Position numbers and translations under genes: made by a program. The notes beneath the pieces are model-generated. The model was given only the letters and a program-made list of their open reading frames with translations. It had not been told where the DNA came from and made no database searches. Of a stretch of DNA of 64,000 bases, positions 51,966 to 64,000 are shown piece after piece; positions within the stretch are counted from its first letter, which is position 1, and the number at the start of each line of letters is the position of its first letter. Source of the stretch: Styela clava (taxonomy: Eukaryota); contig NC_135251.1 of the NCBI RefSeq assembly GCF_964204865.1, forward strand, positions 558,001 through 622,000, written 5' to 3'.

Positions 51966-52835
51966 TTTTTAATAAAAACCGACATATTTGGCATTGACTG
52001 ACATAAGCCGTGTAGTAATATATTAAAACGTTTTCTCAGGAAGAAAAACTTTTGGTGAGGTTGTCGCGGATGTCGAGACAAATTAAAGACAAATTATTGA
52101 AATTATTAGCAGAAATTACCATCGCTTCAAACGTATTGTTTTACATGAATTGGTTTTTACGTCAAATGATAATAACGCAGAACGAAGATCGTAATCAATT
52201 ATACCGTCACAGTACACTGTTAAAAATATATATGAAAATTATGTGTATTTTCAAAGTTAGAAATATTACTGCTGAAAGCTTACTAGAAACCCGTTAACAA
52301 TCCATTGACAAGAGCATGCAAAAATATTATCAGAAAAGCGTATTTGTTGTTCTAAACATCTGTTCATGCGGTATTCTTTTTTACAAAAGTTTTATATATA
52401 ATGCAATACGATTTTTTTCTTTGAACGAGGCCGCCAAAGATCCAAGTTTCAAGCACAATTTGTGCTTCAGTGATATTAGCTTTACAATATTCTACGAAGG
52501 TTATTCCCCAAGAAATATGGCGGCTAACTTCGAAATATTTTACAGCATTATGGAACCGTTAAATTTGATTCCCAGGGCTTTCTTCAATGAATGGCGGCGA
52601 TAATTTTCATGTTTTGTCGTATAAAAATAGGAGAATAATATGTGATCGCCTCATCGCAGTTCAGTCATCGTCTTTGTATAAAATCACTGTCGCTCTCAAC
52701 TGTGTTCATCACAGCGTGTCTTATAGTTCACATCATCACAGTGGTTTGATGTCTTATCTCCCTTGGTAATCAACTTTCGAACCGTCGAGGTTTCCCATGA
52801 ATTTTTGTGTCGAACATAATTATCTCTGCTCCACC

Positions 52836-55800
52836 TCACGAGTAAAATAATTTGCAATGCGATGGCAGATACACCCAGTCGTTACAAATTTGATATTTTG
52901 AGTCTCTTGCAGGAATAGTTCCGCAATCTTTTACTTTATGAGCGTCTTTCATTTTTGCTGGATCAATCACAATGTAGGCTTTATGCGCAGTCATTGCCAT
53001 TCCGCATCGTAAACTTTGAGCATCTGAAAAAGTATTTTCAAATATTGGGTTTTGGTCTTTTGGACTTGTAGAAAGTGTTAGATTAGTTCTCAAAACACGA
53101 TTCGTGAGTCAAAGACGGGTCACAGGTTAAGTCCGTAGTCGAATCAATCAGTGAGTTAAGTCTCACTGGCGTTTGGTGGCGTACGTGTCCAAGTCATTTA
53201 GATATCTCGAGTCACGTCAGTTGGTGACTCGAGTGATGATAAGGCCCGATATTGCATAAAAGTTCTGTCGGAATATAGGCGAAACAATAACATAGGCTCT
53301 GGCGATGTCACAAACGATGCGCTGTGGATGCGTTTGCTATTAGGCGTCTCTCATAAGTTAAATCGTCACTTGTTGAATCACTGTTTCCTGACCAGGAAAA
53401 AATTCAACGGTTTTAGGGGGAGAATTTGATGTTCGTTTTTGCAGGTAAATTTGCCGATTTTCTTTACTTGTTTACGTTATGTGATACATATTTAGAGGAT
53501 TTTTCAAAAAGGACATTAAAGACCATCATTTAGTGGCGGATCTACCCGAATAAATCTGGGATATGAATACAACCATCTTGGCTGTGAACTAACATAAGCG
53601 ATCTCACCTCTAACGTTGACCGACATCACTGGATCGCTGTGTTTGCAGCTTCCCATCTGAAACCATTGTGAATATCCGTCATAAAAGTAAATATCGACAA
53701 GCTGTCCTGTAGCTCTGTGTATTGCACGACTAGGTGACTCAACGTTCATATCAGTTATGCAAAGTTCCTTACTAACTCTTCTGTCTCGTCTGGACGATTG
53801 TCGCTTTACTCTTCTTCTGAAATTTAACAAATTCGTTTGAAACTAGCGCATTATACATGTTATTAAAGCAGTTAAATAAGCAGTATTGGTAGCAACTTCT
53901 GTTAGGCGTTGACATGCCAATCGGAACCTATGGAACTACTAGTAGATTAGAAACTAAGTGTAGTAAATTGGGCGCTCCCGTAGTATGTGCAACAAGATAT
54001 CGGACACCTGAACATAGTATGTGTACCAGGTTAAGGTTAGGCCATAATTTTATTCCAATTTTTATTATTTTAGTTCTATTACGAGTTCGGGGACTAGCCA
54101 AATGACTCCCGTAGTATTTGTACCTGAAATTATGGCCTAACCTGATACACATACTACGTTCCGGTGTCCGCCATCTTGGTGCACATACTACGGGAATACC
54201 GTAAATTGAGTAGGCAATGTCGTAACGAATAGATTTCTGTTATTTTCAAATATATCCTCTCATTTTTCATAATGACTTCTTGTGAATAACCGTGGTTAGA
54301 GTGAAATGTGTCCGAAAAATTGTATGAAAGTGATTTCAGTTAATTGTGATTTGCCTCTATTTATCTAATTTCACAGCCGAACGCATGTTAATAAAGTTTC
54401 TAACCCTGACTTACTTTACAATATTTTTTGGTCGCTCCAAATTTTCAAAGCTGAATGCATTATCGTCGCCGTCTCTTTTCGATCGTTTCTTTCTCCCGGA
54501 TGTGCTAGGAGTCTGGATATCATCTTGACTTTCTACACTTCTACTCAGTCTTGAGGACGAGAATGAAGATTCGAACTCAGATGAAAGTCGTAATTGATTT
54601 TGTTGGTTCACAAAAGATTTCACTGAAAACCAAATCAGTATAAATTAAAACAAGAGGGCAATACTTGAATATAGGCGATTAAACTATCATTATCTGACCG
54701 AAGTTCTGGTAGCCTATGTAACTCAAACTGAAATTTGGCTCAGTACCGAGTTAGCGAATTCAAAACAACGAAGGAGAGCCGTGGCGGCCACACTTAACAA
54801 ATTAAGAACATTGTTCCCGTAGTCAGTAGTTTGTTTTTTACCGTATTGAAAACACACATTGTACATACAGAACGAGGTAAAAGAAAAAATTACCTCCTGA
54901 AATATGCGCACCAAGATGGCGCACAACCTGAACTCAGGTTGTGTACCAAGTTGAGGTATAGGTTGTGCGACATCTTGATGCGCATACTTCAGGAGTACCA
55001 GAAAAAATGCATTCAGTGTGGAAGGGGACGGGATAAACCAGTATTGGTTATCGAGCAGCGTCAACTATAATAAGAAATTAAAAATGAACAGTAAAATTTC
55101 GGGTGATATATCGGATATCACAGAAATCAGAAAAATAAATAAAAGCATAATAACATGGGAAATCTCATATGATCTCGTCTACCAGGTACTCATATTAACA
55201 TACTCACATGTGCTTGTTGTGTATAATCCGCGTCTCCCACTCATCACTGATCCTCCCATGCATAGAGTAAGCTTTGGTTTGTTGGCATCGAAGACCTGTG
55301 ACGGTACATTTGGTGAAATTTTAGTTTGGTGATTCAAATCGGGTCATAAAGAGTCATTTCAAACGATTCTTGAACTAATTTTTAATAACAAACTTGGCCG
55401 GGCTTCTGTGCCATTGTAATATTTTATCTTTTTCAATAAACCAATCAAATATCCGAGCATCGACTTTATTGCGACTTTATTGTTTATTTGCGCAAATCAA
55501 CAGCGGCTAAACATTTGAAATACCAGCAATTGCGAACATTAGCTCGCTTTAGTGTTTTCCTCGACATTGTCAGTTTTTAGTTGTTTAGTTGTCAGTTTTT
55601 TAGATATGAAATTACCAACTAAATTGTTCTCTTAGTTTAATTACGGAAACTTTTTTTTCGGATTGAAAGTATGAAGTATAAAGATAACATAGATACTCGT
55701 TCAAAACTTTCCAAATGCTGTTATTCCTCATTGAAACTATTACAAGCAAATCCATTACTGCGCTTACCTTCTTTGCAATGTCAGGTGCAGCGTCTTCAAA

Positions 55801-57680
55801 TCTGCAAACAGTTGAATTTCTATAAGCTTGCAACTCGCATCTTCGTTTTGTTGTTAAACTTGAAAGATCGATCCTGCCTGCTTCGTCAGTCTGAGGTTTT
55901 CCTCTTGTTGGCCTTGCTCCTGTAGAATGATTATCTATGTTAGAGATTTTAAAATTGGGACCTCACCCTCCATCTTGGGACACGCGAGCACAGCTCTTCG
56001 CTATATATCACTCGCGATGACTAAATTGATTTAGTCTGTATGTTGTTTTTGCTTCCATTTTAATTATGTGACCGATATGCTTTCATTTTTTTGGTTTCTT
56101 ATTATAAATCGTGGCGCATAAAATATCTGATGAAAACATCCTTCATTCTGAAATCACATAGAAATAGAAGCTACTGCTGTTTACTTTTGGTGAATGATTG
56201 GAGAAAATGTGCGAATTGCAGATATGTGAATTACTATTACAACCCATGGTTAGTAGGTTCAGTACAACCAGGCAGCCATACTCTTTGATCTCATTGTACG
56301 GTGTAACGTTTTACTGCTGTATTATTCACTTTCACATTCGAACTATCTAGTTGTGTTGTGGTTTGAGTAATTATTGATGGGAAACCGCTGACACGTGCGC
56401 GCAATTACTCCAAGCAATTAAACGATGCTGAATTAATGTTTTTATAATTATCATGATTAGTTTACGTTAAATATTTTATACGGCCCTCATATTCACTCTG
56501 AACAAGGTTATATACAAGCATCCACGAAGCCGGAATCTACTCGAGTCGGCATTGCCTCTACCTAATTTGGTGAGATTTGTTTTGATGAAATGAACTCGCG
56601 GTTCACCATTATATTTACTAATATTATCATCTTCACGGGTATCGTTGCTCAATAACTAATTTCTATATATTTTTTTGTCTCCCTTTATGCTTAAGCCCAA
56701 TTTTAGATTATTTTATATTCATAATATACAAATGTATTCTCAGTGTGGTGAAAAACATTAACTACTGATTATTGTTAGACGCAATCGGCCGTCAGTCATT
56801 TAGTTCAAGTTTCTGGAATTCAGACCAGAAATTAAGTAATTTCCTATCATTAATGCCGCGCGCTAATGGCGTTTTACCATGTTTTCGACAATTTGTTTAC
56901 GAGGTTTAGCAATTAAAACGTTCAGAAAAGCCGCGTTAATCTGAGGTATTTACCGCTTACAATGTCTAATTCCGTCTTGCGCCCACTCAATGATAAGTGT
57001 TTTAAATACTTTTGTTTCAAATGCGGAATTTAAGAACTTTTTTAAGCAAAATAAGATTTGCGAATGAAAAGTATCAATTTTCAAAAAAAAAAAAATTCAC
57101 CAAGTTCTAGCCGAAATTTGAGTTGATTGAATTGGGAACAACAGCGGATTGCGATGCATTTTCCATTGACCCAGCGACCAGCACTATGTGCCATGCACGG
57201 TGTAACAATATTAAATATGTAATGACAAATCGCAGGAACACACTAATGTCGTAGGTTATTTCAAATAATTACTTTGCTTATCACTGGCTGTTTGTCTTGA
57301 GATTTGTTTGGAGAGAAAGGGTATAAAAGAAATATATTTTGTTGAACTATAGCGACTTCTGAATTAACAGAAGGGGTGCATCCATAATCAATAGTTTGGG
57401 AATGAGATATAAATATGTGGTGTTGCTCAGGGATTTCTCAACATTCAGTCACGGGTCACCCGAGTTTTGAGTCCGAGGTCAAATCGAATTACTGAGTAAA
57501 GTCGCTCTGGAGTTAGTTGAGTGCGAGATATTACATTCACATCAAACCAAGCAGTGAGTGTAACACTTGTCGATTCCATAAATCGAGCCTCCCAAATACA
57601 TTTTGTCAAATACTGAATTCAAACGAACCTGTGGTTGGTTCCTCGTCTTCGTCGTCAGGACGCTCGCAGCTGTCTGGGAT
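52836..57680 (-). CDS. Neurotrophin/Spaetzle-like (cystine-knot cytokine superfamily) precursor, 5'-incomplete, spliced
   Basis: Minus-strand exons with matching phases: 57629-57680 (IPDSCERPDDEDEEPTT), 55768-55919, 55208-55295, 54415-54622, 53608-53816 and 52836-53023 (stop). Furin sites RKKR, RSKR, RVKR and RDRR precede ELC-x8-P-x2-A-x5-G-x2-V..QWF-x4-C ... RC-x6-HKAY ... DWVYLPSHC, the NGF/Spaetzle strand pattern. No signal peptide is seen in the window. Confidence 0.8.
53971..54200. mobile_element. MITE family A, long form, inserted in a SINE remnant
   Basis: Inverted arms, perfect 8-bp TSD gtaaattg. Confidence 0.9.
54890..54999. mobile_element. MITE family A
   Basis: Inverted arms, TSD agaaaaaa on both sides. 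Confidence 0.85.
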
Positions 57681-60600
57681 CTAAAAACGAAGATGATAAT
57701 GAATTAGACAGGTAGTGAAAATAAATGATCGAGAACTTAGTAGTAAAAGTGTGGTCAAGTACGGAACATAAATTCTCGATATTTAATATTGTGTAAACTG
57801 TGATCCGGACATAGTCAAGTCTAACGCCTTAACCGCTTTGTCATTGCACCCGCTGAGGAAAAAGAGATTACCGCTTTTGACAAAAATATTGTAAGCGAAT
57901 TGCAACTTTATATAAATATCCGGAATCATATATTTTCACATCTACACAACTCGGTCGCGAACCGCCGACACCTATCGTATTACATCATAGAGACCGTATT
58001 TTGATATATTATTACATCATAGAAGCCGAATTAATTTTGTTGTCATCCGGTGTTTAGCAGATGACACCAACTACATGAGAGTTGCAATAACAAAATTTTG
58101 TCAATGTTAGGTTGCAAATATAACTTTGCAAATTTGAGGTATTGCTCATGTCGTTAGGCGCGGTTAAATTACGTTACAAATCCGGATCTGAGTTTTTCCT
58201 TTGATTTCAATTTCTGTTTACATAATAGCTCAGATCAATGGTTTGTTTCATTGAAGATTTTATTTGTAAAAATGATACAGCAAGATATAAATCTATAATT
58301 AATAGGGTTTCGAAGATTCAGTTTATTATATAATATCAACTTAAGAACATTTTTCATAAAATCGTGTTACTCAAAGTATTATTTGTGTACAGTTCGGGCT
58401 ACACTGTAATAACGAATAACAGTAGATTTAGAAATTATCCGAACAAGTCTAAATCGGTCAAACAAAAAAGATTTGATTATTTATTTTGCGCTAGAACTAT
58501 TCTGGTACTGCGTTTTATTTACGCATTCTACGTATCGACGCATGGAAACTTATTAATATTCCTTGGTTACTATTTTATACGTTCATTCATCAAACTCCGC
58601 GTGAAAGCAGACGCAACGTGCGTAGAAACTGACCCGAAACCCATAAAAAATGTCAATTTCTATTCATTTTAATATTTGTGAAAATATCGTGTCATAAACG
58701 AATAGAATGGAACATTCTGAGTAATTGCGCAAAGTCACTTATTTTGATTATTAATATCAATTTGCCATTTCCTATTTTACACTTATTCAATTATCTTCAA
58801 GCATGCCTTACGCTATTACGTAGATTTACGTTATGTTTTATGTTGTCACGCATGTGCTATCAATAAAATGGATTCTTCTGACAATTGGGTTCGTATACCC
58901 ATTGCTATTTCTAACTTGTTCACGTACGCAGCGTTGCACGAACGTATTTAAATTAATGGCGTGCGCACAAAGTGACGTTTTGCGCGAACTTTTCAGAAAT
59001 GTCAGATTTAATTTTATTCGCATTGCTACCAATTTATAAATGTCAGTTCACTGTAACCGAAAGTAAAATATTCAAAATAAATACTATTTATATATTTAAT
59101 TGCTTTGAGATGACTGTGGGCTTGGAGTTAGTATTGTTCTTCATTTTCATGCGACGTAAATCTCTTCACTCTAAACAAGGGTTTGCAGTTATTGGGGTGG
59201 CTATATGTGAGAATGGAGGATCGATCTCTTTTCGATTCTGCACTGCCTATCTCATTTATAACACCCTGGGCGGGGCATAGATTGTTAGCCTGCGACGCCA
59301 ACTTGATCAAGTCCAACGCTTCAAGAACTAGGTAGAATCTATTACCCGGAATAAGACAAAATATGTTGGACGTTTAATATGAAACATTTAGAAGTGATGA
59401 TTAAAGTAACGGATAAAGTGTCGTTTGAAAAACATGATCGTTCACGAAATTAATACCAACGTGACAAATTAAAATGCAAAAATAAAAGTTTTCCAACAAG
59501 ATGGTTTCGATTGATATGAATAGAGCATGAATAAGGAACATATGATTGATTGAATGCCTCTAGCTATATCCGAGAATGAATAAAAAAATGAAAAAATGAC
59601 CCATTTCAAATAAAATTAGGAAAATAACAGAAAATAGTTGAACTGAAACTTCGAATCGTGCATGGATTGGATAATAAAGTGGAACAAATTTGAAAACAGA
59701 AAACCAAATGTGTTTGAACATTTTTTAGAAAGTTTGAACAAATTTTATTCCTCGTTAGAACCCAATCACTCATACCCATTTATTGAAGATTCTGCAGCAC
59801 CGTTTTCGCAACTAAATATTAACATTAATTGAATATATTTTTATCAGGGATATGGAATATTCGTAAGTTCTACACAGACTCTCGATTCCAAGGGGAAAAG
59901 GAATAACTCGGCTTTAACTCCAACTCTGGGGAGTGGAATATACAATTCCATATTCTAATGTAAACATCTCGAACCATGCAACCCTGGTTGTTATAGTGGT
60001 TTTGCTAACCCATCTGTACAAAGGTATACATACACATCTCAGTAATGTTGCACATATCACAAGTAAATTGCTAGTTTAAGTAAAACGACGGACCAGATAA
60101 GGAGTATTTATTAGTTAGTTTGGCGATACAGGTTCCAAGACGGATATAATTTTTTAATATTATTTGTTTTCAAACATCTTTCGATTCATAGTAAACATTG
60201 TTGATGACTTGTTCCAGGTTTTTGACATTTTATTGCGCTAGCAAGTAAAATTATTTTGCCCTTTTTTTCAATCCTAATCAGTTTCATATTCAATAATTGA
60301 AGAGGTGATTTCCTAACGAAGTTCCTATCGTGGTTGAAAACTGATTTTTGATGTGAAATACTTGGAACTCTGAAAATAACGAATTGTCAAAATGTTTTAT
60401 ATCTTAGTCATAGAAAGATGCATCTCATTTAGAATTCCAAGAAGAACAACTTAATCTAGAGAAAGATATTTGATCCGGATTTTGGTTTTTCAATTCTCAA
60501 AAATCCGACTAGAGACAAGAAATATTGCAGAACATCGGTAATCGCTAATGCATCATCAACTTGACAGTTATGATGTTTGATTTCCATCAGTGCTCAGGGA

Positions 60601-62630
60601 TTATCTGAATTCCAGATTAACCTCCAGATAACACAAAAAATTACGCAATTTAATATTAACATGCGAGAGATTTCATATGTTATTCACTCCGACAAAGCCC
60701 TGTACAAACATCGCGTGTCGGTAAGGAGCCACCATAGCTAAAAAGGTTCGGGATATTTTCGACTCAGCATTCCTGTTTTCGTTTGTAGTTCAATCTTTGA
60801 TGAATTATTAGCTATTGATACGACTCTACGACTTTTGCACAGTTTGGATACTTAGTATTCTTAAATATATATTAAAATAATACTGATCAATTTGAGAATA
60901 TGAAAAATACTAAACGAAAATATAAAATGAAAATTTCACCCTAAAATAATTTAGGTCCTCTTTTTCAAATCCGTTCATAAAGAATGTAACCCACAAGATA
61001 AATCGTAAGATTTGCGACCAAAACCACAAATATGGAAATGCAAGATTATAAGTGATTTGCGGTGTTGCGTTGACATGAGACACGAGATGATAGTCAACCT
61101 ATGAATGACATCATTGTGAACAAATCTCTCTCCCACGAGATAGAAACATAATTCGATATTTTCACTCAAACCTCGCTGTCAGAATATAAGCTTAGACGTT
61201 TAATTTGCCCGCAAAAGGAATTTTAATTTGAGCAATTTTATTCCAAAATTTGAATTTTGAAAAATATAACGACATTCAATAACTTTACTTAGACTTACTT
61301 TGAAATATTGTTTTGCCAAATTGATATGTAAATTATGTTTGTAATTTCGGCCATAAATTTCATAGAGGACTTGTTGATCATTTTTGGGCGAATGCTGTTG
61401 TAAAAAATCCTGCTCTCCGCTACGAAAAAACCGATCGAATTCAAATTTTTTAGTTTGAGTTCTCCAATATCCGATATTTTATTCAAAATTTTGCCGTTTA
61501 TTTTTGATTTATAAGAACTTTTTATGGAGTATGAAAAGACCATATTCCGTCGCACTTATTGGTCGATCTTTTCAGAAAATTCCACTCTCAGCTAAGGCCT
61601 GGCGGGATCTTCTATATTTGAGCATTGCTCTCTTGTCATATTCTATGTTGTTATATGAGTATATACTTATTAAAATTTATGAGATTTTACATACAACGTG
61701 CGTATTTGGAAGCCCAAGTTCATTTTTGGGAATCGGTTTAAAAACATCGTTGTGCAGATCTATTCAATTAGAGGTCAAACTTAATGAGAGTCTATGATTG
61801 ACTCAAGTGAGGATAAAAATAGTGAAAGCCTGCGGCGACTGACGTTATTTAAAGTAGTTCTGACATTTGTCTTAACATGGAATCTAGATTATTCTAACAT
61901 TTTGATGCGACATTTCCTACATGAGAGATTAGCAATGCTTAAACCTCATCAAACTACCTTCAATCGACAACATCCGATCTCTGCCGGATTTATCGACAAG
62001 GTATTTGACAACGGAACGTTACGCATATTCTTATGGGCGTGAAGATCTAACGCGATGCTACATCAAACTTTCAGGATCCACGGCTCGTTTCAAAAACTTT
62101 AAGCATTCGTGCTCTTCTATAAAAAGATCAGTTTCAGATCGTACCTATCAGTTATTTCATGCCCCACGTTTAATATTGAAAAGCCAACAAACGAAAACAA
62201 AAGAGTAAATGAAACAATAACAGTTGATTTACTCAACGTTGATTTACAAATTACTGCGGTCACCGGGAACGGTACCTATAGTGAAAGACTGATCGTGCCC
62301 CACCGAGGATCGCTCTGTTGCTCCCTTGATGGGCTGAGGACCCAGTTTAGAAAACTTTGGTCTAGCTAGAGTACCGACAATTTGTAGTTCAAAGATCTCT
62401 AGTTTAAAGAGTCATCCAGTTTGTTTCAAGTACCGATGGGTTAAGCTCCCTTGCCGAGATTATTAGAAAAGGAACGCTCCGCGATATGGGAGGCCCGCGA
62501 GACGATTGATACCAGATTAATAAAGTGACACATTTGACACATATGTTGCTATCGCGTTATGTGCGGTCATAATGCCATATTGACCACATCAATTAGTCAG
62601 AGATTATAAAAGACTTTCCGCCAAACTTAC

Positions 62631-62654
62631 GCCGCCCACACTGAACAACTTCCT
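62631..62654 (-). CDS. Candidate 24-nt upstream microexon of the minus-strand gene
   Basis: tttttacag|AGGAAGTTGTTCAGTGTGGGCGGC|gtaagt. Both splice sites are strong and the exon is open in all three frames (phase 0 reads RKLFSVGG). Confidence 0.5.
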
Positions 62655-63969
62655 CTGTAAAAATATGCGAAAAAGGGAATTTATTTCAATACCAACCGAT
62701 AACCTACGTGAATACAACGAATACCTACATGTGTGGAAACCGTAAATGCCTTAATGTCTCGATCAAATGTAAAATATTTGTTTTAGGCTGCGGCATGATA
62801 TCAGTTTGACATTAAATCGTAGGGAGTGTCTCCATCCGGATAGCGAAACCAAAATTTCAATGAAATCATGCAAATTGGTTCCTAGAAAGGATTAGAACTC
62901 TAAATTTTTAACTTTAACCTGTGATGCGACACAATTAAGTCTGACGCTTTTACCACCAGGCCATCTAACCAAAGTAGGTTTGATTTTATTGCAAAATCTT
63001 ACTCGAGCGTTTGTCCTACTTATACGATTAATCACTGACTTTTTTAAATGAATGAAATATAAAACAATATTTTCGTGTCACATCTTTGAATCTAAATAAA
63101 GATTTTGATAATGAGTTAAATAATTTGATGGAGAGGAATAGGAACCATAAAGTGCAAATAAATTAATACGTGATCCCTGGCGCCATATGGTCTGAAAGTG
63201 GATATCTGACATATTGAAATTTAGGGATAGATGGATGTATGGTTAAATTCAGCATTTGAACGGCTTCTTCTATAGAGGGTTATATGGCTGCCATATCGAC
63301 ATCGGGTTAGGAAAAGGGATGGATATATGGTAAGGTACTATCTATAATATCTATCGTCTGATCTGTGTGCTATTGGGCTGTATTATAAACAGCGTCGCAA
63401 GTGAAGTAAGTTTGACAAAACTTGTTCTGATTCCTAACAAAAGCGCTCGGAGATGAATGAAAACTTGCTATGCGTTAGCGTTTCGGTAATTAACAAGTAA
63501 TTACTCTCGCTAAGAAACTGTACAAATAATATGGAGAAATTCTTAGGTATTTTTAAAATTCTGTTTTTTTTTACGCAAACGTATCGCGTTGTCTCGTGAA
63601 ATAATTTATATCAGGTGATAGACACTGTGGAAAATTATGATATGTTTACTAACATCTTGCAGTATTTCTATAAATTCACTTTATTTAGATACGTCGCGAG
63701 ATAATATTGATTTAAACTCTCTAAAAAATGAAGAATGATGCAGAAAATTTATCTATTTTCTGATCTTCCTGGTGTAGACGAAAATAACGTGAAATTGCAA
63801 GTAATTTTAACAAAATTATTTACAGTGTTTAAAAATATCTGTAATTTTCTTGAACTTGCAGAACCCGTCGTAATTGTCTCCCACTCCTTCAGAAAAACGC
63901 GTTTTTAGCGAATTTCGTCATATTTATGGAAAATCATTTGGTGTGTTAGTCACGGTGACACGCCTGTAC

Positions 63970-64000
63970 CTTGTAAAATCTTTGAGAGACAAACAGGAGG
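63970..64000 (-). CDS. Candidate exon 3' end of the minus-strand gene, running off the window
   Basis: ..TTTTACAAG|gtacag donor. The phase-0 reading LLFVSQRFYK would join RKLFSVGG and then IPDSC. The phase-1 reading PPVCLSKILQ is also open. Confidence 0.3.

Follow-up and report, generated by a model that had tools for sequence, protein, structure and literature searches.

Does a short segment of the Styela clava genome encode a neurotrophin- or Spaetzle-like ligand whose cystine knot has been opened? The question was raised by a 64,000-nt stretch of contig NC_135251.1 (positions 558,001 to 622,000 of the forward strand; the window, below), in which an earlier interpretation of the letters alone (the sequence-only reading) had joined two minus-strand segments, 53608–53816 and 52836–53023, into a 118-residue domain behind two basic sites. 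Taking the knots of NGF and Spaetzle to pair cysteines C1–C4, C2–C5 and C3–C6 and to end in C-x-C, it had found C3 and C6 lost together and a new pair, here called Ca and Cb, gained in an inserted loop. We find that the two segments are the last two coding exons of an expressed gene, LOC120335761, and that its product is, taken as a whole, probably the precursor of a convertase-released ligand with an NGF-type fold and an open knot. The gene carries the label ‘uncharacterized’ in RefSeq, matches no domain model and is named in no paper that our literature search found, and neurotrophins, Trk and p75NTR are reported to be missing from another tunicate, Ciona (PMC2772990; also PMC13663574). Should the predicted NGF-like fold hold true, the protein would be a natural case of that fold working with the cystine-knot ring open.

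An expressed gene with seven coding exons

Searched exhaustively with HMMER, exon 6 by itself retrieved the database entry P0001 (XP_039259313, ‘uncharacterized protein LOC120335761 [Styela clava]’), a protein of 411 amino acids (aa) that is 100% identical to this exon over residues 281–349; the joined protein was used only in the form of this entry. All six exons in the window translate into P0001 without mismatch, and the host is therefore an ascidian, a point that the sequence-only reading had left conditional. The gene has seven coding exons on the minus strand, and the joined reading of the last two corresponds to residues 280–411. Of these, window:53609-53815 (−) gives a stop-free 69-aa peptide that starts with R-R-V-K-R and ends with V-N-V-R, window:52836-53021 (−) gives 61 aa that end with C-K-L-F-Y-S before the stop, and a GAT codon split after its first letter (G at 53608, A-T at 53023–53022) supplies the Asp that joins exons 6 and 7. 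The peptide originally quoted and its exon junction match the protein exactly.

Transcript contigs of four runs, X1, X3 and X6 among them, were aligned to window:52400-58399 (6,000 letters). A 3044-nt contig of X1 and a 3299-nt contig of X3 both align to 52400–53023, 53608–53816, 54415–54622 and 55766–55918, with about 54 more transcript letters falling in 57600–57799. As the contigs of these two runs are spliced at the GT-AG site between 53023 and 53608, the predicted junction is used in RNA. Run X6, from a study separate from that of X1 and X3, gives partial coverage of the same exons. The X1 and X3 contigs also continue unbroken past the TGA at 52836–52838 into the 3′ untranslated region (UTR), and no alternative 3′ exon giving a C-x-C end, which the sequence-only reading had named as a possible source of contrary evidence, was found in the transcript contigs.

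That LOC120335761 is a real gene is almost certain. The sequence-only reading had its last two exons right but missed the five coding exons that precede them (four inside the window, exon 1 outside it), together with the Cys-rich N-terminal domain that they help to encode. The parts of the gene are listed here in window coordinates.

52400–52835, minus strand: confirmed part of the 3′ UTR, from transcript contigs; transcript size suggests about 1.4–1.7 kb further below 52400
52836–53023, minus strand: exon 7, the last coding exon; residues 350 (split codon)–411 with C4, Ca/Cb and C5; TGA at 52836–52838; end C-K-L-F-Y-S, no C6
53024–53607, minus strand: intron 6, GT-AG, 584 nt, GTGAGA...TTTCAG; interrupts the coding sequence between C2 and C4, where C3 of the orthologue aligns
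53608–53816, minus strand: exon 6; residues 280 (split)–349 with RRVKR, RRDRR, C1, an S-Q-W-F-Q motif and C2
54415–54622, minus strand: exon 5; residues 211 (split)–280; Ser-rich linker containing the convertase motif RKKR-S (residues 254–258), which is conserved
55208–55295, minus strand: exon 4, 88 nt; residues 182–211; conserved block K-V-F-D...K-L-T-L-C...S-G-R
55768–55919, minus strand: exon 3; residues 131 (split)–181; part of the Cys-rich N-terminal domain, with conserved N-S-T-V-C
57629–57680, minus strand: exon 2, 52 nt; residues 114–131
67316–67654 (G000:C2:625316-625654), minus strand: exon 1; signal peptide and residues 1–113; about 3.3 kb beyond the window end

The position of exon 4 follows from the contig record, in which 86 letters are missing, together with a depth bin and GT-AG sites. 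Intron 1 spans about 9.6 kb (window 57681–64000 and on to about 67315), and because exon 1 lies beyond the window, no first exon encoding a signal peptide turned up when the window was scanned for one. Exon 6 has a NAGNAG acceptor, which gives an isoform, X2, that is one Arg shorter. Four of the five variants in the transcript contigs are synonymous, the sole knot-domain variant among them, and a genome search for a second copy of exon 6 gave only a chance-level match (E 0.18, with internal stops).

A conserved cysteine pattern without C6

P0001 is made up of four parts: a signal peptide (residues ~1–28), a Cys-rich N-terminal domain (~45–205), a Ser-rich linker and the 118-aa C-terminal domain (294–411). 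The six cysteines that had been placed at positions 6, 44, 63, 90, 103 and 113 of this last domain are confirmed as residues 299 (C1), 337 (C2), 356 (C4), 383 (Ca), 396 (Cb) and 406 (C5) of the full protein.

Protein homologue searches with P0001 and with profile A1 returned only P0001 itself and an orthologue, P0003. This 356-aa protein, from a 1564-nt transcript contig, is the sole other full-length relative found; it aligns with P0001 over the full length (BLASTP E 4e-51), with 40% identity in the N-terminal and 35% in the C-terminal domain. All ten cysteines of the N-terminal domain are invariant between the two proteins, as are C1, C2, C4, Ca, Cb and C5. The C-terminal domain of P0003 has seven cysteines (spacings 38, 10, 7, 27, 11 and 10) and ends with Y-C-K-H, without C6. 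The additional Cys stands exactly 10 residues after C2, where the aligned Styela residue is the Arg that closes exon 6; it fits the position of C3 in NGF, which is 10 residues after C2 (Cys58 to Cys68). By this mapping Styela has four of the six knot cysteines and its orthologue five, both proteins end with C-K-x, and the neurotrophin pattern of six cysteines with a terminal C-x-C is found in neither. The earlier claim that C3 and C6 had been lost together is therefore only partly borne out: both are missing in Styela and C6 is missing in all relatives, but P0003 keeps a Cys at C3. Either C6 was lost first, or the extra Cys of P0003 is secondary and serves, for example, in an inter-chain bond.

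A last-exon profile run over the Styela genome found four members only, LOC120335761 and three on a single contig (25.15, 25.19 and 25.20 Mb), whose label C4 is unrelated to the cysteine of that name:

G000:C4:25151874-25152056: paralogous last exon, in tandem with the next two
G000:C4:25193380-25193601: paralogous last exon
G000:C4:25203030-25203248: paralogous last exon

All three of these paralogues carry cysteine C4, Ca, Cb, C-x-D-[WY], C5 and then four to six residues without Cys, and in two of the three C2 is followed by C4 after 16–17 residues, with no C3 between. Candidate upstream exons, which are guessed only, would add C1 and a G-G-x-I-I-x-N-N motif that recalls the I-V-N-N of Spaetzle.

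With C6 missing and the extra pair present in P0003 and all three paralogues, the open knot is a conserved trait of the family and not a product of decay. We considered LOC120335761 as a pseudogene and ruled this out by its intact open reading frame, spliced transcripts, conserved orthologue and mostly synonymous variants. On this point the sequence-only reading, which had argued against decay from the intact frame, holds: the frame is also expressed, the cysteine pattern is common to the orthologue and the paralogues, and the single orthologue, far from having the normal knot that would have spoken for a defective copy, also lacks C6. It had further proposed an undescribed knot-less subfamily. 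LOC120335761 and its relatives do form a small conserved subfamily, in which the status of C3 varies, but a knot without cysteines 3 and 6 is already known in invertebrates as IL-17 type T1C (PMC11087794). The disulfide logic of an open knot is not new; what is new is to find it in a tunicate, in a domain that is NGF-like.

Putative cleavage sites and the N-terminal domain

Three convertase-type motifs lie in the linker of P0001, RKKR (254–257), RVKR (282–285) and RDRR (290–293), so that, as in neurotrophins, a dibasic convertase site would precede the putative mature domain. The RVKR and RDRR motifs that had been singled out upstream of the domain are both present, but in the alignment this pair beside C1 is specific to Styela, and the site conserved in the orthologue is RKKR, which aligns with RKER of P0003.

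The N-terminal domain, encoded by exons 1–4, contains its ten cysteines in an arrangement that includes C-x3-C-x6-C-x3-C and a second C-x3-C, together with an invariant N-S-T sequon. It is predicted to be helical, with low confidence; no Pfam family matches it, and no known structure does so clearly. When region 40–210 was run against a word-indexed database, only P0001 itself came back, and the one known relative of the domain is that of P0003. This conserved ten-cysteine domain has no known counterpart.

A predicted NGF-type fold

We consider it quite likely, from modelling, that the C-terminal domain has an NGF-type fold. An AlphaFold2 model of P0003, made from a 5-row alignment, is all-β over residues 250–350, with predicted local distance difference test (pLDDT) values of 60–71 and long strands at 297–312 and 335–351. 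Searched against the PDB with Foldseek, this model gave neurotrophins in all of the first ~35 rows, the best being NT-3 (1b8k; probability 0.99, target template modelling score 0.64). A second structure search, VIA, which is independent of Foldseek and covered 48,161 representative chains, placed proNGF (3ij2_A, Z 6.5) and NGF (1sg1_A, Z 6.4) at the top, with coagulogen (4.1) and IL-17A (4.0) next. In a second look with VIA, 25 neurotrophin entries scored Z 6.5–7.2 (root-mean-square deviation 2.6–4.4 Å over 84–104 residues), with model residues 238–356 lying on NGF 10–116, and below them came a gap, followed by IL-17 and coagulogen (Z 3.8), PTTH (3.3) and Spz1C (2.2). The ends of the aligned range place C1 near Cys15 of NGF and the last Cys near Cys108, in agreement with the earlier assignment of domain cysteines 6, 44, 63 and 113 to C1, C2, C4 and C5. 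A structural similarity to NGF had been expected from the outset, and in both searches it is neurotrophins that the orthologue's model matches best.

Language-model (ESM) features lead to the same superfamily. For exon 6 by itself the score to clusters of NGF and Spaetzle is 0.91, and residues 294–411 score 0.92 (next 0.90) to Spaetzle, with 197 of 256 features shared and the best ten family matches in one clan; in the calibration of this comparison, shuffled proteins score 0.9 in 4–10% of cases. The likeness to Spaetzle that had been proposed from sequence is thus reflected in the nearest ESM clusters, but not in the structural match to Spz1C or in the Spaetzle domain model.

Several results weigh against an NGF-fold ligand. 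No Pfam family at E<=10 matched the single exons, P0001 or P0003. Hidden Markov models (HMMs) of NGF (PF00243) and Spaetzle (PF16077) run over the whole Styela genome had no match at the locus, nor did PF16077 match P0001; the Pfam check that the sequence-only reading had suggested for these two families thus went against it. Nothing relevant came from searching the PDB by sequence, whether with the two exons or with profile A1. For the fold itself, the AlphaFold2 model of P0001 (2-row alignment) had a pLDDT of 30.8 and was not used, and the case is built on one model of moderate confidence, from five rows, of P0003 and not of the Styela protein; it is on the orthologue's model that the NGF protomer fold was found. 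By the structure-search tool's own calibration note, a Z of ~7 may reflect no more than a similar arrangement, and AlphaFold might have drawn on NGF training data. The seven domain cysteines of P0003 also make the pairing in that protein ambiguous.

Proposed working of the protein

We propose that the signal peptide directs a secreted precursor, from which a proprotein convertase would free the C-terminal domain. The freed domain would fold as neurotrophins do, its long twisted β-strands set in two pairs, with C299–C356 (1–4) and C337–C406 (2–5) tying the four strands as in NGF, and C383–C396 probably acting as a local staple in a C4–C5 hairpin ~20 residues longer than that of NGF. For this set of disulfides as a whole we see a little better than even chances. 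Because C6 is missing, the ring-closing C3–C6 bond would be impossible, and the ring cannot close into a true knot. The product would most likely be an extracellular ligand, probably dimeric, and the structured N-terminal domain may chaperone it, keep it latent or be a product in its own right.

Descent of the domain

Vertebrate neurotrophins (NGF, BDNF, NT-3 and NT-4; PF00243) resemble the predicted protein in having a secreted precursor whose C-terminal domain, of ~118 aa, follows a furin-type site, in the fold on which the P0003 model superposes, and in cysteines C1, C2, C4 and C5 (and, in the orthologue, C3). The predicted protein differs from them in that PF00243 does not match it, C6 (and, in Styela, C3) is missing and the ring cannot close, the longer C4–C5 hairpin bears an extra Cys pair, and the pro-region is a conserved ten-Cys domain and not a Cys-free prodomain. 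LOC120335761 could truly descend, with much divergence, from the neurotrophin gene of chordates, the ligand never having been lost in tunicates and signalling now passing through a p75-like or other non-Trk receptor. The specificity of the fold match for vertebrate neurotrophins, well above Spaetzle, coagulogen and IL-17, argues for such descent, as do the 10-residue spacing from C2 to C3 in P0003, the furin site before the domain, and Q-[WY]-F before and Pro after C2, which resemble NGF. Set against these are the silence of the NGF HMM, an N-terminal domain that is Cys-rich and structured, unlike neurotrophin prodomains, the fact that no more than two full-length sequences are known and, as a weak negative, a genome in which no Trk-type LRRCT_2 exon scores above cut-off. 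We judge orthology to neurotrophins unlikely. On this rather doubtful history, what tunicates have left of the chordate neurotrophin lineage would be this gene with its three paralogues, rebuilt so that the knot is open, the long hairpin stapled and the pro-domain structured and Cys-rich, and signalling without Trk; if it were true, the sister group of vertebrates would have remodelled neurotrophin-type signalling and not lost it.

The NGF look could instead be a fold shared across the superfamily, with the protein belonging to a wider invertebrate assemblage of Spaetzle, coagulogen and IL-17 (T1C, without cysteines 3 and 6) as a lineage-specific tunicate cytokine, perhaps a ligand of Toll or IL-17R. 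Drosophila Spaetzle/DNT proteins (PF16077) provide the nearest ESM clusters to the whole domain and are likewise ligands of the cystine-knot type that lie C-terminal to long pro-regions and are activated by proteolysis, whereas Styela lacks their C-x-C end, PF16077 does not match and Spz1C reaches a Z of 2.2 against ~7 for neurotrophins. Invertebrate IL-17 of type T1C keeps bonds 1/4 and 2/5 and loses 3/6 with all four strands still tied, which is the very arrangement proposed here; however, the IL-17 model PF06083 matches at least 32 exons at other places in the Styela genome and nothing on P0001, at the locus or at the three paralogues, the fold scores Z 3.8 (IL-17 overall 3.3–4.0), and T1 types are reported to have been lost in tunicates (PMC11087794). 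Horseshoe-crab coagulogen has an NGF-like C-terminal half, which matches model residues 238–352 at Z 3.8–4.1, a match much weaker than that of neurotrophins, and as a clotting protein it differs in architecture and function. Membership of this assemblage seems to us a shade more doubtful than neurotrophin descent. Very improbable, in our estimate, is that the fold is an artefact of modelling or feature comparison and that the gene encodes an unrelated secreted Cys-rich protein whose function lies mainly in its N-terminal domain. The lack of any family match in sequence, the pLDDT of the five-row model, the ESM scores of shuffled proteins and the slightly better conservation of the N-terminal domain speak for such an artefact. 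Against it, language-model features and structure search, which are evidence of different kinds, lead to a single superfamily, as do two aligners; the alignment spans the whole domain, and the cysteines stand where the ends of the aligned range predict.

Other features of the locus

The Pfam FGF model, run over the genome, matched 20 exons elsewhere at E<=1 and none near C2:620-626 kb (C2 here being the contig), so that reading an FGF8/17/18 gene there is unsupported at the HMM level.

Two related hairpin repeats of the kind made by miniature inverted-repeat transposable elements (MITE-like) lie within the introns of LOC120335761, at window 53976–54195 (intron 5) and 54894–54995 (intron 4). 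The arms of one are 58 nt long and 90% complementary, those of the other 36 nt and 92%. Contigs of the RNA runs pile up on both, with word depths of 10,000–140,000 and many rearranged joints, and the repeats look like members of an abundant transcribed family.

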